Shown here piece after piece: positions 14,465 through 63,729 of a stretch of DNA of 64,000 nucleotides (position 1 is the stretch's first letter; every line of letters starts with the position of its first letter). The stretch covers positions 62,001-126,000 of IMG/VR virus record IMGVR_UViG_3300046787_000286; one strand, 5' to 3'. The notes under the pieces were generated by a model. It was given only the letters and a program-made list of their open reading frames with translations. It was not told where the DNA came from and made no database searches. Both the position numbers and the translations under genes were made by a program.

Positions 14465-14546
14465 GTAATTTCCTTTTAGTTAAAATGACTTGCGTCACTT
14501 TACATTATATATTCGTAGCTACGTTAAGTCAAGTAAAAACGACAAA

Positions 14547-15101: not shown

Positions 15102-15119
15102 ATAGCTAAGAAAGTTAAA

Positions 15120-15194
15120 TGGTGCGACTGGAGGATTACGATACCTCGACCCAGCGATTATGAGTCGCTTGCTCTTCCTCTGAGCTACAGTCGC
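15120..15194 (-). tRNA. trnI: tRNA-Ile2(CAT), lysidine type
   Basis: AGCGA-CTCATAA-TCGCT arm typical of Ile2; CCA; promoter at 15203-15231. Confidence 0.8.
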
Positions 15195-15227
15195 TTATGT
15201 GTATTATACAACTATCCTAGATAATTG

Positions 15228-24760: not shown

Positions 24761-26080
24761 TTATTTGTATAAACTTAAGAAACCGCGAACAATTTTACCA
24801 ATGTAGGCAATTTGTTCGGGTGTGATTACAGGGCTAGTACCATGGAAGTAAGTATGGGTCATAGCATGTGTTGCGTTAGGGAAATTGTCCTTGGCCAGCT
24901 GCGGGTCCATTAAATGGCTATAAGCAGGCTGCAACATAATATTGCCAGCAAAGTAAGGACGAGTCTGGATCAAGTTCTCTTCTAGGTAATCCACAATGTC
25001 ACTGCGAGTAAACGGTGCATCTTTTCTAATAGTTAACGGGAACGCAAACCAGCTGGGATCACTCTTGGCAGTTGCTCTTGGCAAGTGGAAGAACTCTTCA
25101 TAGTCCTTGTAAATGTCAAACAGCAGTTGATAGTTACGTCGACGCAATGCGTGAATTTCTGGTAACTTTTTCAACTGTTCAAGACCCATAGCACACTGAA
25201 CTTCAATTGGTTTCATGTTGTAACCAATTTCGTCGTATACGTATTTGTGATCAAAAATTTCATCAGGTAAAGTAGGAATCCAGTTATTAAAACGATTGCC
25301 ACAAGTACCACACTTCAATTTGTTTGCTTCTGGCCCAACACAATAGCAGCCACGCCCCCATTCACGGAAGCTACGCAAGATAACATCTGTATTGGCATCG
25401 TTAGTTGCAACGTATCCACCTTCGCCCATGGTCATGTGATGTGCTGGATAGAAACTGCACGATGCCATTAAACCGTAACTGCCCAATGGCTTGCCATCAT
25501 ATGTGCTACCTAACGCATCACAGCAATCTTCTAGAAGAATCAAATTGTGTTGTTTCACTAATTCCATTAATCGATCCATTACTGGAGGATTACCTAGCAC
25601 GTGAGCAAACGTAATAACACGAATATCAGGGTTAGCTAATAAGGTTGACTCAACTTGATCTAAATCTAAGTTAAGTGTATCAAGTTCAATGTCTACAAAC
25701 ACTGGCTCAAAACCAACTTGCAATGTTGGGTTTAACGTTGTTGGAAATCCAGCAATAGGCATTAGAACTTTAGTGCCCTTGGGTAGGTTGTAGCCACGCT
25801 TGGATGTCAACGCTGACATCATTAATAAGTTACTAGATGATCCTGAGTTTGTTAAGATACCTTTGTCTTTACCAAAATACTTCGGAAACTCACGTTCAAA
25901 CTTTAGGCCATCGTCGCCCATAACAAGCCAACCCTTGAGCAAACTTGCGACCCCTGCTACAAATTCTTTTTCGTCAAAATATGACCCGGCATAGTTGACA
26001 AAATCTTTGCCAGCTACCCATGTTTTATTTTCTTGCTTTTGTTTAATGTGCTCTTGCACTAATTTAAGAATTTCTTCCAT
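24761..26080 (-). CDS. rfbH: CDP-4-keto-6-deoxyglucose 3-dehydratase (E1, RfbH/DdhC)
   Basis: NSGSSSNLL, SFYPAHHMTMGEGG (His in place of Lys), RDC-like GRGCYC...C, DHKYVYDEIGYN. Confidence 0.88.
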   Translation of the reverse strand: MEEILKLVQEHIKQKQENKTWVAGKDFVNYAGSYFDEKEFVAGVASLLKGWLVMGDDGLKFEREFPKYFGKDKGILTNSGSSSNLLMMSALTSKRGYNLPKGTKVLMPIAGFPTTLNPTLQVGFEPVFVDIELDTLNLDLDQVESTLLANPDIRVITFAHVLGNPPVMDRLMELVKQHNLILLEDCCDALGSTYDGKPLGSYGLMASCSFYPAHHMTMGEGGYVATNDANTDVILRSFREWGRGCYCVGPEANKLKCGTCGNRFNNWIPTLPDEIFDHKYVYDEIGYNMKPIEVQCAMGLEQLKKLPEIHALRRRNYQLLFDIYKDYEEFFHLPRATAKSDPSWFAFPLTIRKDAPFTRSDIVDYLEENLIQTRPYFAGNIMLQPAYSHLMDPQLAKDNFPNATHAMTHTYFHGTSPVITPEQIAYIGKIVRGFLSLYK

Positions 26081-32991: not shown

Positions 32992-33585
32992 TTAGTCCTT
33001 AATTGTGATGGTTCTTAAATCTGGGTATTCAACTAGCTTGGGTTTAACTGGAAACTCTTTAATACCTTGCAGTAGTGCAATTCCTTTGACTGCTTCTTCT
33101 GGTGTAGGTTTATAGTGATAACCAACCCTAAACTCTTTCTGTTGTTCCCACGGTGATATATTTAGATCGCGACCGTCGTATCGCATACGAATTATTACAT
33201 CATACGCTGCTTTGTCATCTAACAGTATAGCACCACCACGGCCTATATGTAAAGGCTTTGTGTGCCCAAAGCTCAAACATTGCATTTGCCCTTCGCGATA
33301 CATGTTCTTTTCTAGTCTACGTGCTGAATCCCAAATTCGAGTTTTTCTAAACTTGTATTCGCCTACCCACTGTTCATTACCTTCGTAGTAGTATTGAATT
33401 TTCAACTTGTGCATTAGCATCGGAATACTCAAGTAAGTAAAAGGTGTGAACGCACAAAACTCAACCTTGTCATATCTCATACAAAGCTCAATAGCGTGAG
33501 TGCAACAATCGGTCATGATTGCATACGGTGCGCCAGTATATTCTGCTAGTGCGATTTCAAATCGATTAATATCGTCAAATGTCAT
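32992..33585 (-). CDS. short DegT/DnrJ-type PLP aminotransferase-like protein
   Basis: DCCTHAIEL, DSA, SFGHTKPL..GRGGAIL. Confidence 0.75.
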   Translation of the reverse strand: MTFDDINRFEIALAEYTGAPYAIMTDCCTHAIELCMRYDKVEFCAFTPFTYLSIPMLMHKLKIQYYYEGNEQWVGEYKFRKTRIWDSARRLEKNMYREGQMQCLSFGHTKPLHIGRGGAILLDDKAAYDVIIRMRYDGRDLNISPWEQQKEFRVGYHYKPTPEEAVKGIALLQGIKEFPVKPKLVEYPDLRTITIKD

Positions 33586-34532
33586 TTGTTATACCAATTC
33601 CATGCATGTTGAATCATTGCATCTAAATCGTGGTGACGCCAAGCTCCAGCTACTAAATCGAACTTAGCCGAAGTAGCAGTTAACGTTGCAGGATCTCCAG
33701 ACCGTGCTGCACTGATATGAATATTAGGACGCTTACCGGTAATTTCTGTTGCACGTAGTATCACCTGCTGAACTGAGTGTCCATGATTTGATCCAAGATT
33801 ATAGATACCTGCAGGAATCTTGTGATAGATCGCCAAAGCATGTGCTCTAGCAATGTCTTCAACATGAACATAATCACGAACGCAGGTACCGTCAGCAGTA
33901 GGGTAATCCATCCCATAAACCTCAAATGTAGATCCATCCTTTGCAGCCTCTAAGAATTTAGCAATTAAATGAGTAGCACCTGGCTCTTGTCCATGGCAGC
34001 CCTTTGGGTCAGCACCACAGGCATTAAAATAACGAAAGCTAACGTAGTCCAAGCCATATGCTCGATGATATGACTTTAGAATCATGTCAATCATATACTT
34101 GCTTTCGCCATAAGGACTAATAGGTAATTCCGGGAACGATTCGTCTATTGGATTCAGCACTGGCTCGCCGTATGTAGCTGCTGAAGAACTAAAAATAAAT
34201 TTAGTCTTAGGTAAACTCTTGCGAACAATGTCCAACAACTTTAGAGTTTTAACCACATTGTTGTTGTAGTATTCACTAGGATCTTTTACACTTGGTCCAA
34301 CAAGACTAGTGCCAGCACAGTGAATAATAGCATCAGGTTGTTTTGCAATAATCCAGCTTAGAGCCACATCGCTAGCAAAGTCCTGGTACAAGTATCCGTC
34401 GCACACGCCTAACAAATGCTTAGGCGGATCTCTACGATCGATGCCGTACACCACGTGCCCTGCGTCTTTCAACAACAGGGCAGTTTGTCCGCCAATGTAG
34501 CCGGCTGAGCCAGTAACAATTACAGTTGACAT
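33582..34532 (-). CDS. galE: UDP-glucose 4-epimerase
   Basis: GSAGYIG, SSSAATYG, PYGESK, RYFNACG, DGTCVRDYVHV. Confidence 0.9.
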   Translation of the reverse strand: MSTVIVTGSAGYIGGQTALLLKDAGHVVYGIDRRDPPKHLLGVCDGYLYQDFASDVALSWIIAKQPDAIIHCAGTSLVGPSVKDPSEYYNNNVVKTLKLLDIVRKSLPKTKFIFSSSAATYGEPVLNPIDESFPELPISPYGESKYMIDMILKSYHRAYGLDYVSFRYFNACGADPKGCHGQEPGATHLIAKFLEAAKDGSTFEVYGMDYPTADGTCVRDYVHVEDIARAHALAIYHKIPAGIYNLGSNHGHSVQQVILRATEITGKRPNIHISAARSGDPATLTATSAKFDLVAGAWRHHDLDAMIQHAWNWYNK

Positions 34533-48162: not shown

Positions 48163-51100
48163 TTAATCTTTTTTACTAGCCTCAATGGCAGCTAGGCGGC
48201 GTGCTAGGTCTGCAATATCAACTGGCTTAGACTTTTCTTGCTCTCTAGCTTTTTGTCCCATACGTTTGACCATGTCTTGATACTTGTTGCTGTAATTGGC
48301 TTCTTGCTCTTCGTCGTCGCCTTCGTGAACACGGTATGCTGATTGTGCTGCTTCTGGATCTTGGATTGCTTTTTTTGCAATTTTAGATGTTAAGTCGGCA
48401 TAGTAGCGTGGATCGGCATCACTCGCATTTGCCCTAGCAGCAGCGAATCGAGGATTTTGTTGTGATTGTGGAATAACAGGTTCTAGTACATTGTCACTTG
48501 GTTCAAACGATAATGCGTGTTGTCCGGACACTTTATCTGTAATAGAAGAATCGCCTTTGGTAATTCGTTGTGTCATTGCTGACATCGGATCAGCTTTAGG
48601 TGCTGCCAATTGTGTCGCGGTAGATTTCATGCTGGACTTAGCAGGTTGAGCTTTGGGGGTGGGCTTGTTTTTTGTCTTGGGTGCTGCTGGTTCAACAGTT
48701 GTTGTTGACACTGTTGTAGGGGCAACAGATGTATCAGCATCGGCAGCACTAGATTTTTTCTCCGATTTACGACCAGACATTGATGCAAGTTTCTTTTCCA
48801 GCTGACTATTAACATTTTGAAGTTGTCGTAGTCGTGAGCTCAGTGTTGAATTCTGATTTTCTAAGTCGCTGATCTCAGTGTTTTGTTCTTGGTCAATTTG
48901 ATCAATCTGTGCTAGCATTTGATCTTGCTTGCGTTCAGCTTGACGCATTTGATCAAACGCTTGCTGATCTTGATCTTGACTGCGCATAAAATCTTTAGCA
49001 AGTGCTTCAATCCCTGAGCCTGCTGTAGGGAAATCGGCTTTAGCACGACTAATTGCTCGTTGCAGGCCAACGTCTTTTACATCGGGCTCTGCTTCGCCGT
49101 CTTTTTTATCAGCTTCGACTACGCCTTGTTGTGGTACCATATTCGCCGCTGGCGCAGGTTGTGCGGCCATTCTACGTGCAACTTCTCTACGACCAACATA
49201 GTCACCGCTCTTGGGATCTGCCCAGCTTGGTGTAGCTGCTGGTTGTGCTGCCTGTTTTGTAGGTTGAGGGATGCCCGATGCATTAGCTGCGCCGCTATAA
49301 TTCCAGGCCGCTGCATTTGCCGGCATTTGACTTTTGACACTCGACGGAGATGTTGTGCTTGCAGCAGGGCGGCTAGTGGCAGCAGGTGTTGCAGTCATTG
49401 TTGGTTCGACTCTACCTTGTGGGCCAGTTTGTTGTGTAGGTATCTTCATAGAAGAATACACACTATTAATAACTTCTGGCGATACACCAGCGGCTACTAA
49501 TACTTGTCTGACTCCTTCTGAGTCCATTGGTTTTCTTGCTTTGTTCCAGGCTTGCAACAACTTGTCTAACGTAATCTTAGTTGTTAAGTTATGGCCTTTA
49601 GTTTGTGCCCAATTGCCTGCTTTGGCAGCAGCACCCTTAACTGAATCCCACATGCCTTCATTGAGTTTCTTTTGACCAGCAACCACTGAGTCAAACACCA
49701 TATAAATTTGACTTTCTTTTAACTTAGGTGCATTGAATTTCAAGAACCCAGGCTTCTCGGGATCATCTTTCCATCCTGGCATTAAGTTGCCGTCTTGGTC
49801 ATAAGGCACAGGTGATCCAGGATTCTTTGCTAACCAATCAGAATACTCTGCTGATGCTTTGACATTTTGTGTATTGATCTCTGCATTTTGTGCAGCAACG
49901 TCTGCATCAACCTTAGCATTGGCTCTATCCCAAGGATTGGTTTTAGAAGAAGCATAATCAACTTCGTTGCCCTTTGGTGTTATTGTTGGTCTATCGCTAG
50001 CATTGCCGCCCATTTTCATAAATTCTGAATCGGGCTTTAGCAGTGATGCACCATCGTCGAATGCAGGATCTTGTGGACGTCTCTCTCCGCCATCTGGGTC
50101 ATACATCGGAGCTTGATCAGCAGGAATTCTACCACTAGTTGGAACACTTGCTGTTCCACTTGACCCGCTAGGTGCGTTGTATTCTCCTGCACCAGGCAAG
50201 TTCCATTTTGCAGCTTGATTGCGGCTAATCTCACTTGGGGTGTATGCTCCACTCTTAACCTTATCCCATGTGTCGGCTGCTGTGCCTACACCGTCTGCAT
50301 AAGTTTGTGTTGGGCCCAAGCTGCCTGGCACATTTAATTTTTGTCCTGGTTGTAATACATCGGGGTTTGTGAGTTTTGTGCGAACATCATATGTTGGTTC
50401 AGATCCTGTGCCCGGAGGAACAGCATCGCCCATTGGGTTAATGTCAGTGAATGCATTTGGATCGTTCCAGGTTATACGATCACCAGTAGGAACAGTTTGA
50501 CCAGAGTTGGCGGCCATTAAATCTTTTACGCTAACACCATTCTTCTGAGCAATTTGACTTAGTGTGTCTCCCTTTTGCACAACATAATCAGTGCCGTCTG
50601 GTAATTTAGCAGGTGTACCAGTAGGAATTTGTGCATTCGGATTCTTGAAGTAATCAGCAATTGAATGAGCTGCCATTGCCAATGCGCCAGTTTTAGCGCC
50701 CTTGTATAGAGCAGAACTTGCTTTGTCACCTTGCAACAAACGATCTGTCATTTTTAACAGTCCAATTGCGCCAGCTCCGCCTAGCCCTGCGCCACTTAAC
50801 CCTGCGGCAGCAATTAGAGCAGCGTATACGGCGCTTTGAATATAAGGATGTTTTTTAGCAAAGTCACGATACTTGTTGACATATTGCATCACACCTTCGT
50901 CACCACCAGTTGCTGTTTTTAATTTAGCAGCAGCAGTGTCGTATAAATCATCAAATCCTTTAACTGGATGAGATTTCTGTATTTGGTCTTTTAGGCCTTC
51001 CCACGCTGCGTTGAGTTCTGATGCTTTATCAACGCCACGACCAGCTAATGTTCTGTTGTTGCCAGCTTGGGTAGCTGATTGTTCAACTCGTGAAAAAATG

Positions 51101-51807
51101 TCTTGAATTTGCTGAGGTGTTAAACGATACTCAACAAGTTGTGTACCTACTCGATTCCACTGTTCGTAGATCTGTTGGCGGTCTTCCTTAAGAAAGACAC
51201 TTTCATTTACTTTTTTTTTATTTTCTTGTTCTGCTTTCTTAGCAGCTTCACGCTTCTTGCGGAAGATTTCACGGAAGTAATCTTCATCGTCTGGGTTAAC
51301 ACCAGGTGTTTGTTGGCCACGATGTCTTGGCTTGGCTGGCGTATCACCTGGACGAGGATAATCGATTCCCGGTAAGTCGTATGGGCCACCTTCTGCTACA
51401 CTTTTTTTCTTGGCAGCATTCTTTTGACGCTCTTTTTCTAGCCTAGCATCGTCACGCTTGCTTTGCTTTTCTTGTTGTTCTTTGTCGTGGGCTCGACGCT
51501 CTTCGTCGCTCATGTCATTTAGCTCAGCACGTTTTTTATTGCCGGATCTAAATGATGCTGAAGCAGCACGGGCTTCTGACATACCTTGCTTGTGTAATTG
51601 CTTGTAAGCAGTGATTAAATCACTTTCAAAATCATCATCTATGAACTTATTACGGGCTACTGTGCGACCTAAATCTTTAACAACGATTTCCCACGCTGCA
51701 TCTAAAATATCATCATTGGACTGCAATCCTGCTGTTAATTTTTCTGCTACTTGTTCGTAGTAGTGGTGACTTGGGTTTGTGTTCTCATACAAGTTTGTGA
51801 TAATCAT
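48163..51807 (-). CDS. large probable virion-internal protein with Gly/Ala hydrophobic segment and LysM domain
   Basis: YVVQKGDTLSQIAQKNG...PDVLQPGQKLNVP; AALIAAAGLSGAGLGGAGAIG; many V/L-x-E sites. Confidence 0.7.
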   Translation of the reverse strand: MIITNLYENTNPSHHYYEQVAEKLTAGLQSNDDILDAAWEIVVKDLGRTVARNKFIDDDFESDLITAYKQLHKQGMSEARAASASFRSGNKKRAELNDMSDEERRAHDKEQQEKQSKRDDARLEKERQKNAAKKKSVAEGGPYDLPGIDYPRPGDTPAKPRHRGQQTPGVNPDDEDYFREIFRKKREAAKKAEQENKKKVNESVFLKEDRQQIYEQWNRVGTQLVEYRLTPQQIQDIFSRVEQSATQAGNNRTLAGRGVDKASELNAAWEGLKDQIQKSHPVKGFDDLYDTAAAKLKTATGGDEGVMQYVNKYRDFAKKHPYIQSAVYAALIAAAGLSGAGLGGAGAIGLLKMTDRLLQGDKASSALYKGAKTGALAMAAHSIADYFKNPNAQIPTGTPAKLPDGTDYVVQKGDTLSQIAQKNGVSVKDLMAANSGQTVPTGDRITWNDPNAFTDINPMGDAVPPGTGSEPTYDVRTKLTNPDVLQPGQKLNVPGSLGPTQTYADGVGTAADTWDKVKSGAYTPSEISRNQAAKWNLPGAGEYNAPSGSSGTASVPTSGRIPADQAPMYDPDGGERRPQDPAFDDGASLLKPDSEFMKMGGNASDRPTITPKGNEVDYASSKTNPWDRANAKVDADVAAQNAEINTQNVKASAEYSDWLAKNPGSPVPYDQDGNLMPGWKDDPEKPGFLKFNAPKLKESQIYMVFDSVVAGQKKLNEGMWDSVKGAAAKAGNWAQTKGHNLTTKITLDKLLQAWNKARKPMDSEGVRQVLVAAGVSPEVINSVYSSMKIPTQQTGPQGRVEPTMTATPAATSRPAASTTSPSSVKSQMPANAAAWNYSGAANASGIPQPTKQAAQPAATPSWADPKSGDYVGRREVARRMAAQPAPAANMVPQQGVVEADKKDGEAEPDVKDVGLQRAISRAKADFPTAGSGIEALAKDFMRSQDQDQQAFDQMRQAERKQDQMLAQIDQIDQEQNTEISDLENQNSTLSSRLRQLQNVNSQLEKKLASMSGRKSEKKSSAADADTSVAPTTVSTTTVEPAAPKTKNKPTPKAQPAKSSMKSTATQLAAPKADPMSAMTQRITKGDSSITDKVSGQHALSFEPSDNVLEPVIPQSQQNPRFAAARANASDADPRYYADLTSKIAKKAIQDPEAAQSAYRVHEGDDEEQEANYSNKYQDMVKRMGQKAREQEKSKPVDIADLARRLAAIEASKKD

Positions 51808-52656: not shown

Positions 52657-53100
52657 TTATGCTCTCTGATCTTTCAAGAAACTTCTCAACATCCAGCCGT
52701 GCTTGCCATGTGCGTCGATGCGTTCTGCTATAAAGTTAGCAATACCTTGTTGGTTTTCTTGTTCAGATACGGCAAATGTTTCGTTTAGAAGTTCGATCAT
52801 TTGTTCATTGTTGGCCAAAAGTTCTTCAATCATGAGTCGTGCGCGAGGAATCTTTGTTTGACCTGATATACGTGATAGTTCCATGAATCGTTCAAAACTA
52901 CCAGGAGCATAGTCATCTAGTGTACGAATGTATTCGGCTGTGCGGTCAATGGAGTTGTCATATACTTCTTCGTAGAGATCTCCGAAAAACTCGTGCAATT
53001 GTGCAAAGTCTGGCCCTTCTACATTCCAGTGAAACAACTGGGCCTTGATACTGAATGCATATTCAGTTGCTAATAGAGTTTTTAAACTGTCCGCGAGCAT
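52657..53100 (-). CDS. dps: Dps-family ferritin-like protein
   Basis: FHWNVEGPDF..LHEFF..LYE, D..AE.IR, HGWML. Confidence 0.9.
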   Translation of the reverse strand: MLADSLKTLLATEYAFSIKAQLFHWNVEGPDFAQLHEFFGDLYEEVYDNSIDRTAEYIRTLDDYAPGSFERFMELSRISGQTKIPRARLMIEELLANNEQMIELLNETFAVSEQENQQGIANFIAERIDAHGKHGWMLRSFLKDQRA

Positions 53101-53787: not shown

Positions 53788-54188
53788 GTTACAGGGCCAC
53801 CTTCTACCCAGGCATCGCATGTTCGTTTTGCAGCACATTTAAACTTTAAAAATTTGCAATATCCCAATTGCCCAGCATCTATAGTATCGTGTGGATCCGA
53901 CCCAGGCTCTTCTCCAATGCCCTTGGCAATGCAATCTTGCATGTCTTCAGAGATGTCAAATGCTGCACAATTGCCACAACGATTTTGTTTTACTGATTCA
54001 ATATCATCTGTGTTCCATTTATCGGCAAGTTCTGCCCAGTACTCGTCGTTGGGCTCGTTGGGGTTAAGTGGGCCATAGTGATATTCGTCTATGGCCTTTT
54101 GACGATTTTTTAAATTTAGTTCAATGCTTTGTGTAGCAGGTGGACAGCCTTTTTCGATGGCTTCTAATAGATTAATAAAGTTTCTCAT
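53784..54188 (-). CDS. HiPIP-like Cys-rich protein
   Basis: CGNCAAF...GYCKF...TCDAW; leader MRNFINLLEA. Confidence 0.5.
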   Translation of the reverse strand: MRNFINLLEAIEKGCPPATQSIELNLKNRQKAIDEYHYGPLNPNEPNDEYWAELADKWNTDDIESVKQNRCGNCAAFDISEDMQDCIAKGIGEEPGSDPHDTIDAGQLGYCKFLKFKCAAKRTCDAWVEGGPVT

Positions 54189-55219
54189 TTTTTCTTCCCT
54201 GATTTCATGTTCGCGCACCAATGGTACATTCTAGCCTTTTCGCCTGACGCATTTTTAGCACGTTGACGTAAATCTGTAACTGATCCATTGCAACTAGCAC
54301 CTGCACGTTTTACACGTCCGGGGCGACTCTTGCCTTTGACTTTTCCATCTGCAAAGTTTTCTGCTACTGAGTTTGCTCTAGTTAATTTGTATCTAACTGC
54401 ATCACCATCGTCTTGGTGCTGGGCACTATATCCCCAAGCGGCCGCATATCGTTGAACTAGTCTGTTATATAACTTAGCACGACTTTCTGGATTTGGAACA
54501 GGATCGTCGGGTCCGTAGTATGTAGTTGGGTCAACTTCTTTACTGGCTGAAAAGATTAAGTTTTGGGGTTTGTATTTTTTAATGTATTTTTGTATAGCAG
54601 CTAATACAGTGGCAAATATTCTTTGTGCGTCACCTTCGCCTGTTACTTCTTGGCTGTTGTTTCTATGAAAGTCGACCTGTATAACTTCATTACCTTCGCC
54701 ATCGTATTCTTGATTGAACATGATGTTGAGATATGTGCCGTCTGGTAGTTTTGTATTTGCATCAACATCACCGTACTCTGACGTTTCCCATTTGGATTTG
54801 TAAGGTTGATCAAATGCTTCGTCTACGCTTTGTTTCACGGGTATGTTCTTGAGTGCAGCAGCGACACCTGGGTGCATCGGTGCAGGCCAATCGCCAGCTT
54901 CTACCCAGCAATAGTCTTGCCATTCTGGATTGGCACGTGGCTCAAACTCACTTGGTACCGTACCCAAGAATGTAACATACTTGGCGTTTTCGCCAATGCG
55001 CTTTAGCTTGATAGGTCCAGTGTATCCACCTTCTTCGGCTAGTTCTCTGCGAGCGCATTGCTCCAGTGATTCACCAGGCTCTCTGCCACCGCCCCATGCT
55101 GCCCATAGCCCGGGATCGTTAATATCGTTGCTACGCTGTTGCAAGCCATAACGACCCGTGTCTTCTGCGTAGAGCACAATGCCTGCGGCACCTTGGTCTG
55201 TAAATTCGTGTGCTCTCAT
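54185..55219 (-). CDS. Nudix hydrolase + two further domains
   Basis: Nudix box GGREPGESLEQCARRELAEEGG; VDEA and VAEN junctions. Confidence 0.85.
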   Translation of the reverse strand: MRAHEFTDQGAAGIVLYAEDTGRYGLQQRSNDINDPGLWAAWGGGREPGESLEQCARRELAEEGGYTGPIKLKRIGENAKYVTFLGTVPSEFEPRANPEWQDYCWVEAGDWPAPMHPGVAAALKNIPVKQSVDEAFDQPYKSKWETSEYGDVDANTKLPDGTYLNIMFNQEYDGEGNEVIQVDFHRNNSQEVTGEGDAQRIFATVLAAIQKYIKKYKPQNLIFSASKEVDPTTYYGPDDPVPNPESRAKLYNRLVQRYAAAWGYSAQHQDDGDAVRYKLTRANSVAENFADGKVKGKSRPGRVKRAGASCNGSVTDLRQRAKNASGEKARMYHWCANMKSGKKK

Positions 55220-55686
55220 ATTTTTTTAACTACCTTAATCTGTGCTTTTCTAGGATCGACAATTCTAACTTCTTGTTCGTGATGTTGCTGGGCAAAGTTA
55301 ACACCGTGATTGGTAATGTTATTAGGACCAACAGTGGCAGACAATATGTATGCGTGTGGCTGCTCATCTAAGTCCATGTCCATAGCCGCATACTCACCAG
55401 CTTCTGATTGCAAATATTCCTCAGCCGATTTTGGAGTTAAAGTCCAGTGCAATCCGGGCTGTTGTAGATTTGGCTGCTGGCCAGGGACTACCCAGATAGC
55501 ACGATATACTATACCACCTTGTGCTACTAACTTATCTACCGCAGCCATATACGCATCCAGTATTTGGTGTGCTTCTTTTTCGGAATCGTAATAGTCTGTT
55601 AGATAGGCAATTGCATCGACTATGCGCTCTGGCTCGTGCAGCGTATTCAGTTGAACATTTTCTACAACAAACTCGTTTGCTCTCAT
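55216..55686 (-). CDS. ADP-ribosyltransferase-like protein
   Basis: VYRA, GLHWT, EQEVR order fits the R-S/T-E ART fold; leader MRANEFVVE. Confidence 0.5.
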   Translation of the reverse strand: MRANEFVVENVQLNTLHEPERIVDAIAYLTDYYDSEKEAHQILDAYMAAVDKLVAQGGIVYRAIWVVPGQQPNLQQPGLHWTLTPKSAEEYLQSEAGEYAAMDMDLDEQPHAYILSATVGPNNITNHGVNFAQQHHEQEVRIVDPRKAQIKVVKKI

Positions 55687-55690
55687 AGTA

Positions 55691-58600
55691 TTATCCCATC
55701 TCCGGTACTACTGTAACACCATCTACTAGTTGTTGTGGATTCTGTGTTAGCCAAGCCATTGCAATACGGTTAGCATCGCTTTGAGCATTGCCGATACCGC
55801 CAAATCTATAAATCACTTGATTGTTGGGATTTAATATCAACCACTGTCCAGTAAATGATCCTGTGCCCGATGGATTGTAAGTTTGCCCAACCTGGCTACC
55901 TGTCGCAGGTTCGTTTGCTGTAGTAATGATGCCACCTTGTGCTGCATCGGCTCCAGACCCAATTGATTGAACTGTATAGTTATCACCCACAAAATCGTTA
56001 TCGTCGTAAAAATCGCCTGCTATGATAGCAGCTTCTTGGCGGTCGGGTGCATAAAACTGATGCACTAAACGATTAGTGCTGCCGTCTCGAATTTCCCAGT
56101 TAGGGGCTTGTTGTGAAACACTTTCGCGAGTTCTTACAACAAATTCAGCAGGATCGAGCCCTGTTTGTTGTATCCAAGCTCTTGCTTCGGTTTCGGCTGT
56201 TTGACGATCTGTGCTTGTGGGATTAAAGTAAACTTGGTTGTTGGCCATACTAGCAAGTTCCCACGGGCCCGGGCCATGTGGGATTAAATTGTTTACTCCA
56301 GACGATTGCTGTGCAGGTTCAATTTCGCGAACTTCGATATCGGTGCGCATGTTAGGACGCTCAGCACGTTGTTGTTCTATCCAAGATTCAGCAGCTTCTT
56401 GGCTTGGGAATCTATACAATGGTGGCGTTTCACCTCTTGAGTATGTGCCAGGCTGATTAGCAAAGCGGTCGTTTGCGTTGATCCAAATACCCCAGTTGCC
56501 TTGATTTTGTTGTGCCGGTGGTTGTGCAGTTGGTGTAATTTCGCCGGATGCTGATACTCTACCAACTTCTTGACCTTGCGGGTTTCTAACAACAACATCA
56601 ACATCACGGCGTTGTGCCCAATATTGTGCTCTTTGCAATGCTGTCTGATCATTGCCATACTCATCACCTGCAATCAGTCCACCGCCTGTGGTAGTTATTC
56701 TGTAAGTCCCGCCACCTTGTGGTGTGGGTTCAGCACGACCGTGTCCATACATAGCATTGATGTTGCTGTTGGGGTTCTCTTGTTTCCATTGCTGTAATAC
56801 GCCGTATGCGTCTGCATAATCAGAAGCATTAAATCTATAGAAGATCTCATTGGTATCACCATTCTTCAAATACCAATCGCCATCGGGATTGTTTGGACGG
56901 CCTGCTACTGTTGTGCCTTGCGTCTGTGGCTTCTCTTCGTATGGACGAAGTGGCTCAGCAGTCATGCTGTTGATTGCAGTAGGACCTGGTGCAAGTCCCC
57001 ACTCTCGTGCGGCTGTTGTTTTAGCTTCGCTTTCATTGTCAGCAACAACTTCCATACGCTGGCCGTTGTATTTTACATTCCACCACATCTTGCCGGTGTT
57101 TTCGCCCTTGGCCACTTTGCGTTGTAATTGTGCTTGTCTAAGGAAACTCTTTAGTGCAGCCTTGGGCATTTCGCCAGCAGCATAACGACTAAAGATATTC
57201 AACAAGTCTTTATCACCCGGAGTTGCGATCTTATTAGGTGTGATGCTATATTCAGACTGAGTTGAATCGGCTGGCAAGTTTGCTTTAACTTTTTCCCATG
57301 CTTCCTTGGCAGTTTTTGCTTCAACGTTGGTCTTGAACGCAGGCATTTGTCTGCGAGTATCTTTGTCCCACACAGTAGCATTGGATGTAACAGTCCATTC
57401 TACTTCGCCAGTCTTTCCTCTACGTGATCCTATGTCACCAGTTAATACTTTGTAGAGTTTCTTTTGATACTCTTCCTTATACTTGTTAGGATCCATAGCA
57501 GCATCCATTGCCACAACCATACGATTGATTGTGTCCTGCATCTTTTTAGGATTTTCGGCAATGTCAGTTAGGTAGTCGCCACCCGGGGAACGGAACTCAA
57601 TACGATTGTCCTTGGTATTGATACTGGTGAACTTGTCTGTGACGCCAGAGTGTAATATCTTAGATGCCGCAGCGTCAAGGTGAGACTTCATCTTGTCTAA
57701 CAACTCTTTGGCTTTTTCTGGCTTGTCTCTTGCTAATTGCTTAACTTTTTCAATAGCAGGTTTAGCGTATGAGTTTCCAATACGATCAAACTGGCGTAAT
57801 ACGTGTTCGTCGCCTAGTAATAATGCAGCCTTTAAGTAATCTAGTTTGTCAAGATCGTAGCCTGGAATTGAAATGTTTGTGTGCATACTAGTCTTGTTGT
57901 TCTTGCCGGTATACACGCCATTGTCAGCGGCCCAGGCTTGTACCTTTTTCATTACTGTGCCAATATCTTCTAGAGGGATAGGCGGACTTACAAATTCCAA
58001 TCCAGTGTCGCCCTCGTTATCAGGAGTGTCTAAACTGCCGTCCGGTTCGATAGTAAAGCAATCGTCTGGCTTGTTGCTGCCAACCGATACCCACCCGTTG
58101 CCCACCCACTTTTTATAGCCACCGCCGTAGCCGTGGTAGTTAGAGCTGTATGCTACACTATCCATGCCCATGGCATTCATAAAGTCTAACGCAACATTTT
58201 CAATATCGCCTGCTGAGTCACTGCTGCTGGTATAATACGGCCAGACCACATTACCGTAATTGCCTTCGACGTCAGACGCATAACTAATGCTAATACTGTC
58301 TAGCCAGTCACTTTCAGAGTACTCGTCTCTTTTTTCGGCTTCAAATTCTTCCTGGGCATAGTCATAACTGCGACCTTGTGCTTCCCAAGTCTCTACATAG
58401 TATTCTGCGTTGATTTCGCGTAACTTTTCTGCTACTAACTCTCCAAACTCTTCTGATGTAGGGTCTAGATCAGGGTAATCGGCCTTTACTTCATCTTCGG
58501 CTCGTTCTTGGTAGTCCTCAGGATCAAAAGGTTCTTCACGGTCTAAGTATTCCTGGAAGAACTCAAAACCGTTGTTGTGCCAGTCTTGATCTATTTGTTC

Positions 58601-60649
58601 CGTTTGCCAGTCAAAGTAATCAGATTCCATTTGCTCACGAAGTCTGCGGATTTCATTGCGTCCGTTGTAATCACCATCATCAAAAAAGTTCACAGCATCA
58701 TCAATATCACGAACACGCTCGTCCTGATCGTAGTCAGGTTCCTGGTCGCGGTCTTCATCGTTGCTTACGTTGGGAACATACATTTCAAACTCTAAACCAA
58801 CTTTAGCACCTTTGATATCTTTGGCTAGATTAGCCAAGTTTTTAGAAGTCATCTTGACTTCAAACAAGTCTTGTTCCTTGAATGCTTGTAACTCTTCAGC
58901 CAGTGCCTTGTTTAAATGCTTGCCTGTAACATCTTCCCCGCCTTCAACATCAGGATCTAGATCATGTGTTTTTAATCCAAGACGTTTGAATTGTTTTAGA
59001 TAGCCTTGTTCAGCTTCGTCTGATGGAAAAGTAATAACTGTTTGCGGTGGCCCTTGATTGTAGTCCTTTGGATCAGCATCATCCATGTCTGAAATATCCA
59101 TGCCCAGTCTATACCAATCAGTTAAGTCGGTAACATCTACTTTGGTTGTGCCTGCTGGCATCTGTGGCTCAAACTCTGGCCCCGTAGCTTCTTGATTTCC
59201 GAGCTCGTCTTCTTGCTCGCCGGGTGCTTGACTTAATGGAGTTGAATTGTAACCATAACTCTTTTTAGCAGTGGCTTCCTGTAAGTTTGCTGACTTGATC
59301 AACAACTCTGGCTTGCCTTGCTTGTCTGTTTTAAGAGCCATCTTGTTGGCTTCTTTGCCTGTTTGACCAGGATGCACATCCACAGTTAGTGCCATATTGA
59401 AACGTGGATCTTTTGCTTGGGCTCGAGTAGGAATATATCCTGATGCTTCGTTAACAGCTACATCTTCGAAGTATTCTGGGTGCATGCCTGCATAGTCACG
59501 CATTAACACACCAGCACGGGCATTTGCTTCGTTTTCATAGGCAGAACCTGTTTCGCCTGCATCCAGGGGCATAGATTCTGTTTCGTCTTGTTTGCGATGA
59601 GTAAGTTCGTGTGCTAGGGTGCGCAATATGTCCATGATATGACGGTTGCCTAGAGCTACTATTAATTCACCTGTAGCTGCATCGTAACGACCAAAACTCT
59701 TGTTGCGAATTGACCACTCGGGATCTTTCTTGAGGCGCAACTTTGGAACATTGTCGATTTCTAATTCTTCAACAGCAAAGTTTAAAAAATCTCTAATAAT
59801 CTCTTCTTGTGTAGGGGTAGGCTTCTCACTCAAGAACATTCTAGTACTAGCACCGACTCCGTCTGGGGTAGCAGTGGCATCTTCGGCCACGTGCTTGTAT
59901 CCGTAAATAAAAGGCTTTTTAACTTTAACTTTGTTTTGTTCTGCTAAACTCAGTTCAGCATCTCTTGCAGCGGCCTTTGCATCGTATAACTTTGTGATGT
60001 AACCTTGTGTGCGCAACATTTTGTAAGCAAGATTCTCTGGGCCTAGTTCTCCGTGTGCATCTAGGCCTGCTTGGCGATATGTTTTGATCTTTCGAGCTAG
60101 ACTATCAATACGCTCCATGTCGTTGCTTTTTACAGCATCGTCAATTCTGTGCTTAAAATCTTCGTACTTGCTGCGAACTGCATCGTCATCTACTGTGGAC
60201 TTGCGATATCTAGGAATGTTGATCCAGTCGTTGTTTAGTACAGAGAACACACCTTGGCTTACTGGAGGCTTGTTTGCATTTTCTACATACAACTCTACAT
60301 CATAACCGCCAATTTTGATATTGTGCAAGTCGTTATATTGATATTTCTTTGCGTCAAACAATTCACGATAAACATCATCAGAGTCTGCTTGTGGAATATC
60401 AACCACTAGGTGTAAGTCGATGTCTGAATATGGTGTATATGTGTAGCCTGCATTTGATCCTGATACAGTTATGTCTTTTACTTCTAAATCAGAAAGTCCC
60501 AGGAACTCTTTGAAATCGGCAGCAATTTCAAGTAACTTGTCACGTACTTCAGGGCGCATCTGTTCTTTTTGCCACAGGCGTGGGTTCAACTGTTTGTTGA
60601 ATTTAACTGCATCAGCAAGGTTATAGGAATCAAGTTCTTGTAAGTTCAT
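55691..60649 (-). CDS. 1652-aa polyvalent protein: Pol-beta NTase + HExxH metallopeptidase + amidoligase + C-terminal repeats
   Basis: SGSNAGY...SDIDLH; LAHELTH; GLEFEM, EPDGSL, LEFVSPP, SMHTNIS, RIEFRSPG; about 8 short A-x3-EA repeats; late motif at 60675-60681. Confidence 0.8.
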   Translation of the reverse strand: MNLQELDSYNLADAVKFNKQLNPRLWQKEQMRPEVRDKLLEIAADFKEFLGLSDLEVKDITVSGSNAGYTYTPYSDIDLHLVVDIPQADSDDVYRELFDAKKYQYNDLHNIKIGGYDVELYVENANKPPVSQGVFSVLNNDWINIPRYRKSTVDDDAVRSKYEDFKHRIDDAVKSNDMERIDSLARKIKTYRQAGLDAHGELGPENLAYKMLRTQGYITKLYDAKAAARDAELSLAEQNKVKVKKPFIYGYKHVAEDATATPDGVGASTRMFLSEKPTPTQEEIIRDFLNFAVEELEIDNVPKLRLKKDPEWSIRNKSFGRYDAATGELIVALGNRHIMDILRTLAHELTHRKQDETESMPLDAGETGSAYENEANARAGVLMRDYAGMHPEYFEDVAVNEASGYIPTRAQAKDPRFNMALTVDVHPGQTGKEANKMALKTDKQGKPELLIKSANLQEATAKKSYGYNSTPLSQAPGEQEDELGNQEATGPEFEPQMPAGTTKVDVTDLTDWYRLGMDISDMDDADPKDYNQGPPQTVITFPSDEAEQGYLKQFKRLGLKTHDLDPDVEGGEDVTGKHLNKALAEELQAFKEQDLFEVKMTSKNLANLAKDIKGAKVGLEFEMYVPNVSNDEDRDQEPDYDQDERVRDIDDAVNFFDDGDYNGRNEIRRLREQMESDYFDWQTEQIDQDWHNNGFEFFQEYLDREEPFDPEDYQERAEDEVKADYPDLDPTSEEFGELVAEKLREINAEYYVETWEAQGRSYDYAQEEFEAEKRDEYSESDWLDSISISYASDVEGNYGNVVWPYYTSSSDSAGDIENVALDFMNAMGMDSVAYSSNYHGYGGGYKKWVGNGWVSVGSNKPDDCFTIEPDGSLDTPDNEGDTGLEFVSPPIPLEDIGTVMKKVQAWAADNGVYTGKNNKTSMHTNISIPGYDLDKLDYLKAALLLGDEHVLRQFDRIGNSYAKPAIEKVKQLARDKPEKAKELLDKMKSHLDAAASKILHSGVTDKFTSINTKDNRIEFRSPGGDYLTDIAENPKKMQDTINRMVVAMDAAMDPNKYKEEYQKKLYKVLTGDIGSRRGKTGEVEWTVTSNATVWDKDTRRQMPAFKTNVEAKTAKEAWEKVKANLPADSTQSEYSITPNKIATPGDKDLLNIFSRYAAGEMPKAALKSFLRQAQLQRKVAKGENTGKMWWNVKYNGQRMEVVADNESEAKTTAAREWGLAPGPTAINSMTAEPLRPYEEKPQTQGTTVAGRPNNPDGDWYLKNGDTNEIFYRFNASDYADAYGVLQQWKQENPNSNINAMYGHGRAEPTPQGGGTYRITTTGGGLIAGDEYGNDQTALQRAQYWAQRRDVDVVVRNPQGQEVGRVSASGEITPTAQPPAQQNQGNWGIWINANDRFANQPGTYSRGETPPLYRFPSQEAAESWIEQQRAERPNMRTDIEVREIEPAQQSSGVNNLIPHGPGPWELASMANNQVYFNPTSTDRQTAETEARAWIQQTGLDPAEFVVRTRESVSQQAPNWEIRDGSTNRLVHQFYAPDRQEAAIIAGDFYDDNDFVGDNYTVQSIGSGADAAQGGIITTANEPATGSQVGQTYNPSGTGSFTGQWLILNPNNQVIYRFGGIGNAQSDANRIAMAWLTQNPQQLVDGVTVVPEMG

Positions 60650-60717
60650 AGGTATATATTAGAATATCAACTTGTATTTATTCATAGCATAGTTTACAGG
60701 ATATAGATGCTGAAGTC

Positions 60718-60742
60718 AAAAAAAAGCCCCTTGCGGGGCTTT
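60718..60742 (-). terminator. intrinsic terminator
   Basis: AAGCCCC-GCAA-GGGGCTT-TTTTT. Confidence 0.85.
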
Positions 60743-61725: not shown

Positions 61726-63729
61726 TTATTTTTTCTCGTCTACGTAGTCTTCGTCAACGGATTGTTGCACAGGGCTTGTGCCCAAAACGGTTGCATTTTT
61801 ACTATCGGCCCAGGCGTGTGCAGCTTCAGCTGATGGGAACGTCTTGCGCCACATCACACGTTGGTCACGGCGGTCGTAAACATAACCATATGCTTCCACT
61901 GGTCCTGCTTCCTCTGCTACTTGTTCTGGTTTGAATTCCAAAGCACCTTGTGTATTGCCCATAATGATATTGGCAATCTTGTAGATGTTGTCAAACGTCA
62001 AATCAAAGTGACGCTCAAACGGATGTCCTTTTAGTAAACTAAATGTAGTAAGTAGTTTACCTTTTATTTGTCCGGTAAGGCCGCCTCCGGTATACTTGCC
62101 AACTTGAATACTACCGCGTGTGCTTACTGCACCTTTGTTACGTCCACCCGCTCTAGTCTCATAGTATGAGTAAAGCATTGTTGGGCCATACTCCATTGGG
62201 TCGTGTGGAACAAAGCGGGCTTTGATTGTTGTCTTTACAACGTTTTCTACACAGTCGAAGTCTTTGGCTACAATTTGTTTTACTTGTTCAATGAATTCGG
62301 GCCATGGAATAAACTTACGTGATCCACCACCTTCATCCGGAACAAATTCGGTTAAGTGGGCTTCGTTCATTTTACCATCACTACTAAATCCATAATATTT
62401 CGCTACATCTTGTAAATCACTAGGACGGTACTTGTTGAGAAAGTCTGATATTAAATCGTGGATGTGTCCGGAGTTCCCTGCTTGGTCTAATGCACCGGGC
62501 AAAGGTATTTCACCATATTTCCATCTAATATGCACACCACCAGGACTGTCTATGTACCAACGTCTTCCGTCCCAGTCTAAACCAAATTTATCTACTGTTA
62601 CTTTTAGTTGTATGTCTTTGGCCGGAGTACCTGGCACAGTCTCGCACCATATGTCAAATTGATTGTTGCGTAGATATCTTGATTTGTATGGCTTGCCGAA
62701 GTTTGGCGGCACATATCTGTCTCCATCATCGCCATTACCTGGAGCGAACTCGTTTAGTTGGTCAGCTAGTTGTTCTTCACTCCAGCCAATGTAGCTATCA
62801 CTATCATCGTCGCCGATACGCATAACATACGCACCGCCTTCCTCGCTTTCAAGCTCGCCAATTTCCCAACCGACTTTGGCTAAGGCTTGTTCTACTCGAC
62901 GTTGTGTAGCTACATCTGGGGCAGAATACCACATTTTAGCAAATCGAAGTAACACATCTTCGGGGTCATTTTCTCTGTCGTTACCACTGCCGGGTGCAAA
63001 TTCGTTTAGTTCTTCATCTTCAGTCATGCTAAAGTCCTTCTTCATGAAGTCCTTGGTTCTAGACACTGCTGGCTGTATTTTTTTAAGTTTAGGTGGCTTG
63101 CTTCTAAACATCACAGAACCTAGCATATTACTTTCGTCTAGCGTGGTACCCATGGCTGCGTCTAGCATTTTAACAACAGTAGCAGCAAGTTTAGGATTTA
63201 TTTGTGTTTTTGGGTACAAACTCATTACAAGAGCTGTCTTACGTCTAGTATCCAATGTGGGCCATGCTGTGCGTATTTCTGTAGCACTAGTCATACCAGG
63301 ACCAAACTCCACTGTGGGCAAGTAAGCCATGTAAGCATGCTTATTCATCGGAGCAAGTTCATCTTGTCCTTCATAAGGTTGCAAGTATGCAGGGTTGCCA
63401 TCTTTTTTAACGCCGCCTGCTTGTGGTGGTTTGTTTGCGTCCTTTTCCGAACGTACAAAAATTAATTGGGTGGTTTCGGGATCAAAGTGATCTGTAACTT
63501 CTCGTGCTTGAAACGGTGACTTAACTTGTATGAATTTACCAGGATTAACGCCTGCTAGTTTAGCAAGTTTTTCTTTAACAGCAAACGGGAATGGTCTAGC
63601 GGATGTGTCGTTGGTTGCAGCCACATAGACATCTGCGCCGGGGAAAGCATCTTGTGCTTGTTGGTATAGTGCGTAATGGCCAGCGTGGAACGGATGAAAT
63701 CCGCCTGGCATGATAATAACTTGCTTCAT
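61726..63729 (-). CDS. HIGH-motif cytidylyltransferase-family domain + modular C-terminal segments
   Basis: PGGFHPFHAGH, SATEIR; three L(N/T)EF(A/V)P-headed segments; late motif CTAAATA at 63736. Confidence 0.75.
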   Translation of the reverse strand: MKQVIIMPGGFHPFHAGHYALYQQAQDAFPGADVYVAATNDTSARPFPFAVKEKLAKLAGVNPGKFIQVKSPFQAREVTDHFDPETTQLIFVRSEKDANKPPQAGGVKKDGNPAYLQPYEGQDELAPMNKHAYMAYLPTVEFGPGMTSATEIRTAWPTLDTRRKTALVMSLYPKTQINPKLAATVVKMLDAAMGTTLDESNMLGSVMFRSKPPKLKKIQPAVSRTKDFMKKDFSMTEDEELNEFAPGSGNDRENDPEDVLLRFAKMWYSAPDVATQRRVEQALAKVGWEIGELESEEGGAYVMRIGDDDSDSYIGWSEEQLADQLNEFAPGNGDDGDRYVPPNFGKPYKSRYLRNNQFDIWCETVPGTPAKDIQLKVTVDKFGLDWDGRRWYIDSPGGVHIRWKYGEIPLPGALDQAGNSGHIHDLISDFLNKYRPSDLQDVAKYYGFSSDGKMNEAHLTEFVPDEGGGSRKFIPWPEFIEQVKQIVAKDFDCVENVVKTTIKARFVPHDPMEYGPTMLYSYYETRAGGRNKGAVSTRGSIQVGKYTGGGLTGQIKGKLLTTFSLLKGHPFERHFDLTFDNIYKIANIIMGNTQGALEFKPEQVAEEAGPVEAYGYVYDRRDQRVMWRKTFPSAEAAHAWADSKNATVLGTSPVQQSVDEDYVDEKK

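Follow-up and report, generated by a model that had tools for sequence, protein, structure and literature searches.

What a phage does with a single protein of 1652 residues, in which several enzymes are strung together with a run of small repeats, and whether such a protein enters the host along with the DNA, were the questions raised by this locus. The first phage proteins that a host encounters are believed to be polyvalent proteins, few of which have been studied. The original prediction, made from the nucleotide sequence, was of a polyvalent protein joining a nucleotidyltransferase (NTase), a metallopeptidase (MPTase), an amidoligase and about eight alpha/beta repeats, injected to act on host targets. 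The gene (P0001) lies in a 64,000-nucleotide stretch of DNA (hereafter the window) from a 214-kb contig of an uncultivated giant phage; the contig is 62% complete according to IMG/VR, and the phage was placed in the T4 superfamily from its PolB. Its frame ran uninterrupted from an ATG start codon that agreed with the conserved N-terminus of its relatives, and both the domains and the units of the predicted protein were recovered (Table 1). More than 1070 metagenomic relatives of 1000-2200 aa shared the same NTase-MPTase-amidoligase core. Residue conservation was assessed in 26 aligned relatives per domain, with identity down to about 45%; units, linkers and the helical hairpin were counted in a set of 120 relatives, and the sites flanking the SGYIP peptide in 115. 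We are very confident that the domain architecture is as described here.

Table 1. Features of the P0001 gene and of the DNA directly upstream of it, in order of transcription after the whole gene (positions are those of the window).
Feature	Residues (aa)	Position	Strand	Basis
Whole gene P0001		55691..60649	(-)	One open frame, 1652 aa plus stop
Intrinsic-terminator-like hairpin ending upstream gene		60723..60742	(-)	8-bp stem, 5 GC pairs, then T-run
Sigma-70-like promoter candidate, TTGACT-17-TAAACT		60691..60719	(-)	Consensus scan
Pol-beta-type nucleotidyltransferase, helical C-terminal half	1-240	59930..60649	(-)	PHROG, Pfam and invariant motifs
Linker 1, motif PDGV..sT.MFLxE, contains VAED	254-278	59816..59890	(-)	pLDDT <50
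Minimal zincin (gluzincin-type) metallopeptidase	279-394	59468..59815	(-)	AF2 and structure search
Conserved disordered peptide (SGYIP) between VNE/A and LQE/A	402-458	59276..59446	(-)	Invariant residues, pLDDT <50
Optional acidic segment, insertion hot spot, ends LAEE...LFEVKM	459-600	58850..59275	(-)	Presence varies among relatives
Glutamine-synthetase-like amidoligase	612-1075	57425..58816	(-)	Pfam PF12224
Acidic insert within amidoligase	630-865	58055..58762	(-)	236 aa, net charge -47
Unit U1	1081-1139	57233..57409	(-)	AF2: strands, helix, strand; pLDDT ~90
Helical hairpin DLLNIFSRYAAGE..ALKSF.RQAQL	1145-1181	57107..57217	(-)	AF2: two helices
Unit U2, then LRPY motif	1185-1238	56936..57097	(-)	AF2: beta-beta-alpha-beta
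Unit U3	1255-1304	56738..56887	(-)	AF2; hhalign vs U5, U6, U7, U8 93-98%
Unit U4, beta-beta-alpha-beta-beta	1313-1375	56525..56713	(-)	AF2
Unit U5	1383-1444	56318..56503	(-)	AF2; hhalign vs U3, U8 93-95%
Unit U6	1460-1509	56123..56272	(-)	AF2; hhalign vs U3, U7, U8 91-98%
Unit U7	1515-1565	55955..56107	(-)	AF2; hhalign vs U6 98%
Disordered linker, conserved DAAQGG motif	1566-1598	55856..55954	(-)	pLDDT ~30
Unit U8, C-terminal	1599-1652	55694..55855	(-)	AF2; hhalign vs U3, U5, U6 91-93%

The N-terminal domain possessed all the elements of a Pol-beta-type active site: an hG[GS] motif (S63-G64-S65), DxD on the next strand (D76-x-D78, here D76-I-D78) and, on another strand further along, a third carboxylate (E119), each invariant in the 26 relatives. 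It matched PHROG 36119 at E 6e-38, and aa 1-250 scanned alone scored 22.2 bits against Pfam NTP_transf_2 (cut-off 21), compared with 19.5 bits, under the cut-off, in the whole protein; 26/26 relatives matched the same family. Stand-alone homologues with 33-40% identity were encoded by Maribacter, Synechococcus and Lak phages. In the second domain H347-E348-x-x-H351 and E372 were invariant across the 26 relatives, and the AF2 model (pLDDT >90) had zincin topology, running from a helix through three strands to the HExxH helix and the Glu helix. Almost all of the 50 structural matches listed were zincin-fold metalloenzymes, with Wss1 the best (Z 8.7), followed by Spartan (8.4), selecase and PprI/IrrE (both 7.5) and ArdC (5.7), and the best Foldseek matches were minigluzincins at E 9e-3 or worse. 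What the domain has in common with selecase/abylysin, Wss1/Spartan, IrrE/PprI and the ArdC MPTase is a zincin core of ~115 residues; every Pfam match was sub-threshold, and none of these families gave a significant sequence match. A language-model search for look-alikes returned unnamed viral clusters and one IrrE-like cluster, and a stand-alone homologue of 124 aa was found in Synechococcus phage B23.

The third enzyme matched Amidoligase_2 (PF12224) at E 1.3e-7 and 32.2 bits (cut-off 22). E620, E622, E868, D870, E885, H923, E1018 and R1020 were invariant in the 26 relatives, so that the Glu, His and Arg constellation of the family is shared; the difference lies in the acidic insert, which separates the first strand (ExE) from the remainder at the EPDGS motif and was conserved both in the P0001 family and in gp196 of the Agrobacterium jumbo phage Atu_ph07. 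Members of Amidoligase_2 are linked to a GATase or GGCT-type partner, according to the Pfam description, whereas this one is fused into a polyvalent protein and had no such linkage among the neighbouring genes inspected. The family is reportedly that of the glutamine-synthetase-like amidoligases of Iyer et al. 2009, and we know of no characterised phage-family member. By enzyme class, the P0001 domain can reasonably be read as a predicted ATP-dependent ligase of an amine to a carboxylate. All three enzymes of the original prediction thus held up, the MPTase through its invariant HExxH and Glu and its matched fold, the amidoligase through its Pfam match and constellation, and the NTase through its motifs and the match of its isolated fragment. 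Sequence searches of the PDB with four parts of the protein and with NTase and MPTase profiles gave nothing significant, nor did NCBIfam and PADLOC scans of five parts.

Behind the amidoligase, AF2 modelled eight beta-beta-alpha-beta units over aa 1081-1652 with a mean pLDDT of 79.5, in agreement with the number of repeats first predicted. Profiles of U3, U5, U6, U7 and U8 mostly matched one another in hhalign (90-98% probability; controls <=0.4%), the pairs U5-U7 and U7-U8 giving no direct match, and these five units are demonstrably homologous to each other at the level of sequence profiles; U1, U2 and U4 had only topology in common with the others. Leave-one-out HMMs built from the eight repeats of this one sequence were weak and beat 500 shuffles for two repeats only, so the repeat claim rests on the AF2 model and the profile-profile comparison. 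The units were acidic to neutral in charge and cassette-like, with disordered, Q/P-rich linkers between them. Their frequency among relatives differed widely: U1 was rare (6/120), U2, U5 and U8 were found in 115, 96 and 118 of the 120, the helical hairpin was kept in 120/120, and the DAAQGG motif in 70/120. When stand-alone genes were sought with a unit profile, the only matches were 9 short proteins encoded on contigs of 1-2 kb, probably pieces of family members.

The units may plausibly serve as target-binding modules. The best structural matches of U4 were weak ones to two small phage inhibitors, AcrIF9 (Z 6.6, 72/76 residues) and T4 Dmd (Z 6.1, rmsd 2.2, 53/57 residues), covering nearly all of either chain but at values within the Z 7-8 background of the search, and there was no sequence similarity between either protein and U4 or the other units. 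AcrIF9 and Dmd are, like the units, small and neutral to acidic; they are encoded by separate genes, whereas the P0001 modules are fused in tandem. For the whole 577-aa repeat model, Foldseek found no PDB match at E 0.001 or better and a shape search of ESM-Atlas stayed at TM <0.3, and looking for counterparts of the repeat region with a language model yielded nothing usable. A weak likeness to the tandem DNA-binding modules of HNH homing endonucleases was set aside, the units being acidic to neutral and TM ~0.1. Neither the cassette array nor the SGYIP peptide matched a Pfam or PHROG family, and to our knowledge neither has been described.

The linkers held short motifs of their own. The PDGV..sT.MFLxE motif of linker 1 occurred in 83/120 relatives, in 10 of them duplicated. 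The 57-aa disordered peptide at aa 402-458 (SGYIP...DPR..MALTVD..PGQTGKEANK..LL.K..NLQE) had a hydrophobic-x-E site just before it in 112/115 relatives and after it in 103/115, the conserved positions reading hydrophobic-x-E/[SA]. Four sites at module borders, VAED (254), VNEA (399), LQEA (456) and LAEE (583), had been noted in the original prediction. All exist; VNEA and LQEA are the conserved pair that flanks the SGYIP peptide, VAED and LAEE lacked strong conservation, and the protein as a whole had no excess of hydrophobic-x-E sites (20, compared with 28 +/- 4.6 in shuffles). As a possible shared packaging signal, the SGYIP peptide and PDGV motif were looked for in all other ORFs of the contig, and neither was present.

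Around the constant core, the family varied by addition and exchange. Accessory domains that came and went among relatives were ART (PF03496), ParB (PF02195), a deaminase (PF00383), GNAT (PF00583), GH19/LysM (PF00182 plus LysM), M23 (PF01551), M48 (PF01435) and a second MPTase, of which ART, ParB and the second MPTase were inserted in other relatives at the site of the optional acidic segment; the small units were reshuffled into 65 different orders among 120 proteins. Because the core stayed constant while domains and units varied, the polyvalent label given to the protein at the outset is supported: several catalytic domains, an MPTase hub (HExxH with a downstream Glu) and combinatorial variation were all found. 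Membership of the polyvalent class is likely, and within that known class the architecture is a new one. The family draws a clean divide between a fixed enzymatic core and a quickly reshuffled small-module array and, with more than 1000 metagenomic members, is essentially restricted to uncultivated giant phages.

Our preferred explanation, at a probability of roughly 0.55, is that P0001 is a virion-borne polyvalent protein, cut in its linkers, which modifies host or defence components and carries exchangeable binding modules. On one chain it combines three enzymes, whose active sites are intact, with a variable string of eight modules, joined by disordered Q/P-rich linkers holding the conserved short motifs. 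It would be produced for packaging into the phage head, would enter the cell along with the DNA, and may be cut at the conserved sites in its linkers, whether by a T4-type prohead protease (hydrophobic-x-Glu) or by the metallopeptidase that it carries. Once freed, the enzymes would act on host or defence components through nucleotidylation and amide ligation, and the small modules may serve as binding or inhibitor modules, swapped in an arms race. Nucleotidylating, clipping and peptide-tagging of host targets, the activities originally proposed, are a reasonable reading of the enzyme classes. Taking the analysis as a whole, the protein is probably carried in the virion and would act on the host early in infection.

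The evidence that we count for carriage in the virion is indirect, and the one experimental hint comes from Atu_ph07. Its gp196 (AUZ94978.1) is homologous to the amidoligase of P0001, at 30% identity and E 5e-27 across 325 aa; the two share the ExE strand, the acidic insert and a C-terminal EYLKKL helix, and gp196 differs in being a stand-alone protein of 500 aa without NTase, MPTase or units. Mass spectrometry detected gp196 in virions, 14 peptides covering 30% of it (PMC6102473, Supplementary Table S5); the virion preparation was PEG-purified only and also held a topoisomerase (PMC6102473), so carry-over is possible. The gp196 gene adjoins the portal gene and a Pol-beta NTase gene, gp195, whose product had no detectable homology to the P0001 NTase beyond the active-site motif, and Atu_ph07 encodes a T4-type gp21 protease. 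RsoM2USA also carries a homologue, on which the proteomics of that phage, spanning only 10 bands, is uninformative. We further count the conserved sites around the SGYIP peptide and the wall-lytic domains of relatives, some of which end C-terminally in peptidoglycan hydrolases (M23, GH19+LysM); these would fit a role in envelope passage. Against the preferred explanation as a whole we count the position of the gene outside a structural block, its promoter candidate, the failure to find protease, capsid or portal genes on the contig, the unenriched hydrophobic-x-E sites, and the background-level Z of the likeness of U4 to AcrIF9 and Dmd.

Several of these points would be accommodated if P0001 were unpackaged, an early intracellular product of its own promoter that acts in host takeover or anti-defence and possibly cuts itself, an alternative that we regard as unlikely but of some weight. 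Its neighbours within the window were PolB, ferritin and NUDIX genes, and in relatives DnaJ, ClpB and ClpP, so that a setting of replication, chaperone and nucleotide-metabolism genes is kept across the family, and no structural genes were found nearby. The terminator and then the promoter candidate lie directly upstream, an arrangement that would suit early expression; sigma-70-like sites were no more numerous than in shuffles, and the candidate is to be read as a lead only. The T4 late-promoter motif TATAAATA occurred three times in the window (3.5 expected) and not upstream of P0001. Searches of the contig, which is 62% complete, for a T4-type protease, a capsid and a portal gene found none of them, and PF03420 (gp21-type protease) had no match there; the relative Atu_ph07 has gp21. 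Some homologues of the NTase and MPTase, moreover, are ordinary small stand-alone cyanophage genes. C-terminal M23 and GH19+LysM domains are, however, ill-suited to a purely cytoplasmic early protein, and the virion-borne homologue of the amidoligase and the T4-protease-like sites conserved around the SGYIP peptide also speak for packaging.

Far less probable is a biosynthetic enzyme for DNA or cell-wall modification, whose amidoligase would join a modified base or wall precursor to an amino acid or amine, with the other domains as accessories. In viral contigs, genes with an amidoligase domain are found together with genes for thymidine hypermodification (PMC8989533), and genes for a radical-SAM enzyme, an aminotransferase and a sugar epimerase lie elsewhere in the window. 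These genes, however, lie 20-55 kb from P0001 and do not cluster with it, a non-exhaustive look saw no association with 5-HMUDK or aGPT-Pplase, and the combination of an MPTase with shuffled modules and with ART, ParB and lysin domains that vary is not the architecture of a pathway enzyme. A structural virion protein (decoration, fibre or inner-body) with architectural modules and relic enzyme domains can be given slightly less credence still, for while large size and tandem small modules are common among phage structural proteins and the virion-borne Atu_ph07 homologue is encoded next to a portal gene, the gene lies outside a structural block, long disordered linkers separate the modules, and none of the catalytic residues of the three enzymes varies among the relatives aligned, which argues for activity and against relic domains.

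Returning to the virion-borne polyvalent protein, a bolder version of it would see the C-terminal array as a delivered polyprotein library of Acr- or Dmd-like inhibitors, each unit aimed at one defence or housekeeping target, released at the linkers and exchanged as cassettes, and the NTase and amidoligase as a fixed pair that covalently marks host proteins and may echo the pairing of GlnE with glutamine synthetase. This is speculative, and we think it improbable as it stands. If the modules are defence inhibitors, new anti-defence domains could be drawn directly from the family, and if the amidoligase tags proteins, phages would be imposing a post-translational modification of a new type. Through the conserved linker motifs, the processing of such giant proteins can be approached directly.

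Among the closest known systems, two more can be set beside P0001. In T4, gp21, the prohead protease, processes the internal head proteins and Alt at (L/I)-x-E/ sites, and P0001 likewise has conserved hydrophobic-x-E/[A/S] positions at module borders; it differs in having no N-terminal capsid-targeting peptide, because its N-terminus belongs to the NTase fold. The polyvalent class, which comes from phages and conjugative elements, was defined by Iyer, Burroughs, Anand, de Souza and Aravind in 2017 around a hub domain, the zincin MPTase, and autoprocessing of its members was proposed in the same work (PMC5512222). Like those proteins, P0001 is very large and gathers unrelated catalytic domains around a zincin-like MPTase, its architecture varies between relatives, and the accessory set of the relatives (ART, ParB, GNAT, lysozyme-type) matches the phage-type set of the class. 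Unlike them, it lacks a MuF, ArdC-N or N4-RNAP anchor domain and has the C-terminal beta-beta-alpha-beta cassette array and the SGYIP peptide. The family adds a glutamine-synthetase-like amidoligase to the polyvalent repertoire and brings the Pol-beta NTase into its phage-type proteins.

The multi-domain polyvalent gene originally predicted here was borne out as a single open reading frame, carried on a viral, linear contig of 214,006 bp for which the IMG/VR record gives a completeness estimate of 62%. The family-B DNA polymerase (PolB) of the contig shared 43-52% identity with its counterparts in Sinorhizobium phage Phosso, Agrobacterium phage Atu_ph07 and Rak2-like jumbo phages, which identifies the carrier as an uncultivated, giant T4-superfamily phage; its hosts are environmental bacteria. 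The largest open frame of the contig (4777 codons, about 1232-15565 of the whole contig, + strand) lay outside the window.

Features of the polyvalent gene, its product and other genes of the window (aa, residues of the polyvalent protein)
Feature	Position	Strand	Remarks
Polyvalent gene	55691-60649	-	One open frame, 1652 codons, ATG start
Terminator of upstream gene	60742-60723	-	Hairpin and T-run
Promoter-like site TTGACT-17-TAAACT	60719-60691	-	Such sites not commoner than in shuffled sequence
156-aa ORF	55216-55686	-	No family match; directly downstream of polyvalent gene
NUDIX hydrolase and DUF6934-like fusion	54185-55219	-	Directly downstream of polyvalent gene
Ferritin/Dps-like protein	52657-53100	-	Pfam Ferritin E 2e-22; PHROG 3636 'DNA binding protein'
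1214-aa protein	48163-51807	-	LysM domain; weak endolysin/transglycosylase PHROG matches, aa 264-503 of this protein
667-aa protein	61726-63729	-	Two genes upstream; weak cytidylyltransferase-like N-terminus, E 0.005, below cut-off
Radical-SAM homologue	392-1600	+
Aminotransferase homologue	24761-26080	-
Nucleotide-sugar epimerase homologue	33582-34532	-
VNE/A	aa 399-402		N-terminal flank of SGYIP peptide
LQE/A	aa 456-459		C-terminal flank of SGYIP peptide

All three predicted enzymatic domains were recovered. The nucleotidyltransferase (NTase, aa 1-240) matched PHROG 36119, of unknown function, over aa 10-233 (E 6e-38), and residues 1-250 alone scored 22.2 bits against Pfam NTP_transf_2 (cut-off 21), a family matched by 26/26 aligned relatives, among which the Pol-beta signature (G64-S65, D76-x-D78, E119) did not vary. 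Stand-alone homologues with 33-40% identity occurred in Maribacter, Synechococcus and Lak phages. A Pfam Ub-Mut7C match fell within the first 250 residues of 7/26 relatives (best E 1.2e-5), with none in the window's own protein. For the metallopeptidase (aa 279-394), sequence methods gave sub-threshold matches only, every one to a zincin family. Its AF2 model (pLDDT >90) had the topology helix, three strands, HExxH helix and Glu-bearing helix, with minigluzincins as top Foldseek matches. Almost all of the 50 matches listed by exhaustive structural comparison were zincin-fold metalloenzymes, including Wss1 (Z 8.7), Spartan (8.4), selecase (7.5), PprI/IrrE (7.5), ArdC (5.7) and the zincin-fold nuclease YbeY; the two exceptions listed were TAF2 in TFIID, of aminopeptidase-like fold. 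H347, E348, H351 and E372 were invariant among aligned relatives, and Synechococcus phage B23 encoded a stand-alone homologue of 124 aa.

Within the amidoligase domain (aa 612-1075), Pfam Amidoligase_2 matched aa 864-1025 above threshold. The first strand, G-[LM]-E-F-E-M (aa 618-623), lay outside that match and did not vary; a conserved insert with a net charge of -47 (aa 630-865) separated it from the remainder. E620, E622, E868, D870, E885, H923, E1018 and R1020 were likewise invariant in the alignment. Atu_ph07 AUZ94978.1, which we equated with gp196 from gene order, gene lengths and masses, was a stand-alone homologue of this module (30% identity over 325 aa) sharing the ExE strand and acidic insert. 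In Atu_ph07, gp196 is encoded two genes away from the portal protein; its gene adjoins, on the opposite strand, a Pol-beta NTase gene (gp195) whose product resembled the NTase of the polyvalent protein at the active-site motif only. This adjacency hints weakly at joint action of NTase and amidoligase.

The prediction of about eight C-terminal alpha/beta repeats agreed with the AF2 model of aa 1081-1652 (mean pLDDT 79.5), in which eight beta-beta-alpha-beta(-beta) units (U1-U8) and one helical hairpin were separated by Q/P-rich linkers of low model confidence. Profiles of orthologous U3, U5, U6, U7 and U8 matched one another with hhalign probabilities of 90-98% for most pairs (hairpin control, 0.4% or less); U5-U7 and U7-U8 had no direct match and were connected via U3 and U6, while U1, U2 and U4 had topology alone in common with the rest. 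The units were neutral to acidic. Fold searches with the whole repeat model found no confident relative, and the best matches of single units in exhaustive structural comparison were all inside the background range stated for the search: for U4, AcrIF9 (Z 6.6, 72/76 residues) and T4 Dmd (Z 6.1, 53/57 residues, rmsd 2.2); for U5, a chain of 70 residues from a type I-C CRISPR-Cas3 entry (Z 5.2). In BFVD the same array was present in two entries titled 'Amidoligase enzyme [uncultured Caudovirales phage]' (E 5e-10 and 6e-9), and a few stand-alone phage proteins of 58-87 aa had one such unit fold; a search by sequence for stand-alone unit genes found none.

A word-indexed search yielded >1070 relatives of 1000-2200 aa, metagenomic without exception, on contigs as long as 362 kb. 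No full-length relative was present among 50,697 phage genomes, a set from which the source genome itself may be masked. Across the best 120 of these >1070 relatives the order NTase, metallopeptidase, SGYIP peptide, amidoligase, hairpin-U2 ... U8 was constant, and inner units were lost, duplicated and reordered (65 different orders in 120 proteins); the window's protein was the sole one among them with all eight unit types. Identity was mosaic across segments, one relative (P0005) sharing 98% over the NTase and 51% over the repeats. In relatives, the segment joining the SGYIP peptide to the amidoligase carried an inserted ART, ParB_N or second M48/M78 peptidase domain; cytidine deaminase, GNAT, LysM+GH19 or M23 lay inside or after the unit array. 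This family-wide evidence supports the polyvalent reading. We infer the protein's substrates and the function of its units, which may be exchangeable binding or inhibitor modules.

The consensus of T4-type prohead proteases is (L/I)-x-E followed by A, G or S. Hydrophobic-x-E sites showed no enrichment in the protein (20 observed vs 28 +/- 4.6 in shuffles). Four sites had been proposed as separating its parts; VNEA and LQEA stood out, and VAED and LAEE were less often conserved (64/115 and 45/115 relatives). The former two flank the SGYIP peptide (SGYIP..DPR..MALTVD..PGQTGKEANK..LL.K), whose 57 residues are among the most invariant of the protein, yet predicted disordered; no other ORF of the contig was found to contain it. 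Hydrophobic-x-E preceded the peptide in 112/115 relatives and followed it in 103/115, with a variable middle residue, the pattern expected of T4-type prohead-protease sites, making these candidate cleavage sites. Recurrent linker motifs of the family included PDGV..T.MFLxE, duplicated in some relatives, LRPY, DAAQGG, PGSTLDLQRQRA and DNWS.DFERR.

In the key proposed step, the protein would be packaged in the virion and injected into the host. The conserved flanking sites argue for this, as do peptidoglycan hydrolases at the ends of relatives and the virion association of gp196, found in Atu_ph07 virions by 14 unique peptides (30% coverage; PMC6102473, Suppl. Table S5) together with the 845-aa gp197 and the portal gp198 (PMC6102473). 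However, that preparation was purified by PEG only and also contained topoisomerase (PMC6102473), and the gene neighbourhood is non-structural, with a possible early promoter upstream; that no structural or protease genes were found on the incomplete contig also counts against packaging.

Relatives share this neighbourhood: upstream DnaJ and ClpB, then a ~300-aa PHROG-1574 protein, and downstream NUDIX/DUF6934, ferritin, ClpP and PolB. The next gene starts 5 nt after the polyvalent stop, and the 156-aa ORF and NUDIX fusion probably share a transcript with the polyvalent gene, which a NUDIX or DUF6934 gene follows in relatives as well. The ferritin/Dps-like gene is also kept there, and DnaJ and ClpB homologues of relatives lie further upstream than the position of the 667-aa protein gene. 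The 1214-aa LysM protein, missing at the equivalent position in both relatives examined, is a possible second large protein that associates with the virion or acts on the wall. The radical-SAM, aminotransferase and epimerase homologues, which did not cluster with the polyvalent gene, are possible genes for sugar or nucleobase modification.

These features fit the class of polyvalent proteins described by Iyer et al. 2017 (PMC5512222), in which a zincin metallopeptidase, proposed to process the protein, is the hub domain. As amidoligases are not mentioned in that survey (PMC5512222), the window's protein represents a new architecture of a known class.
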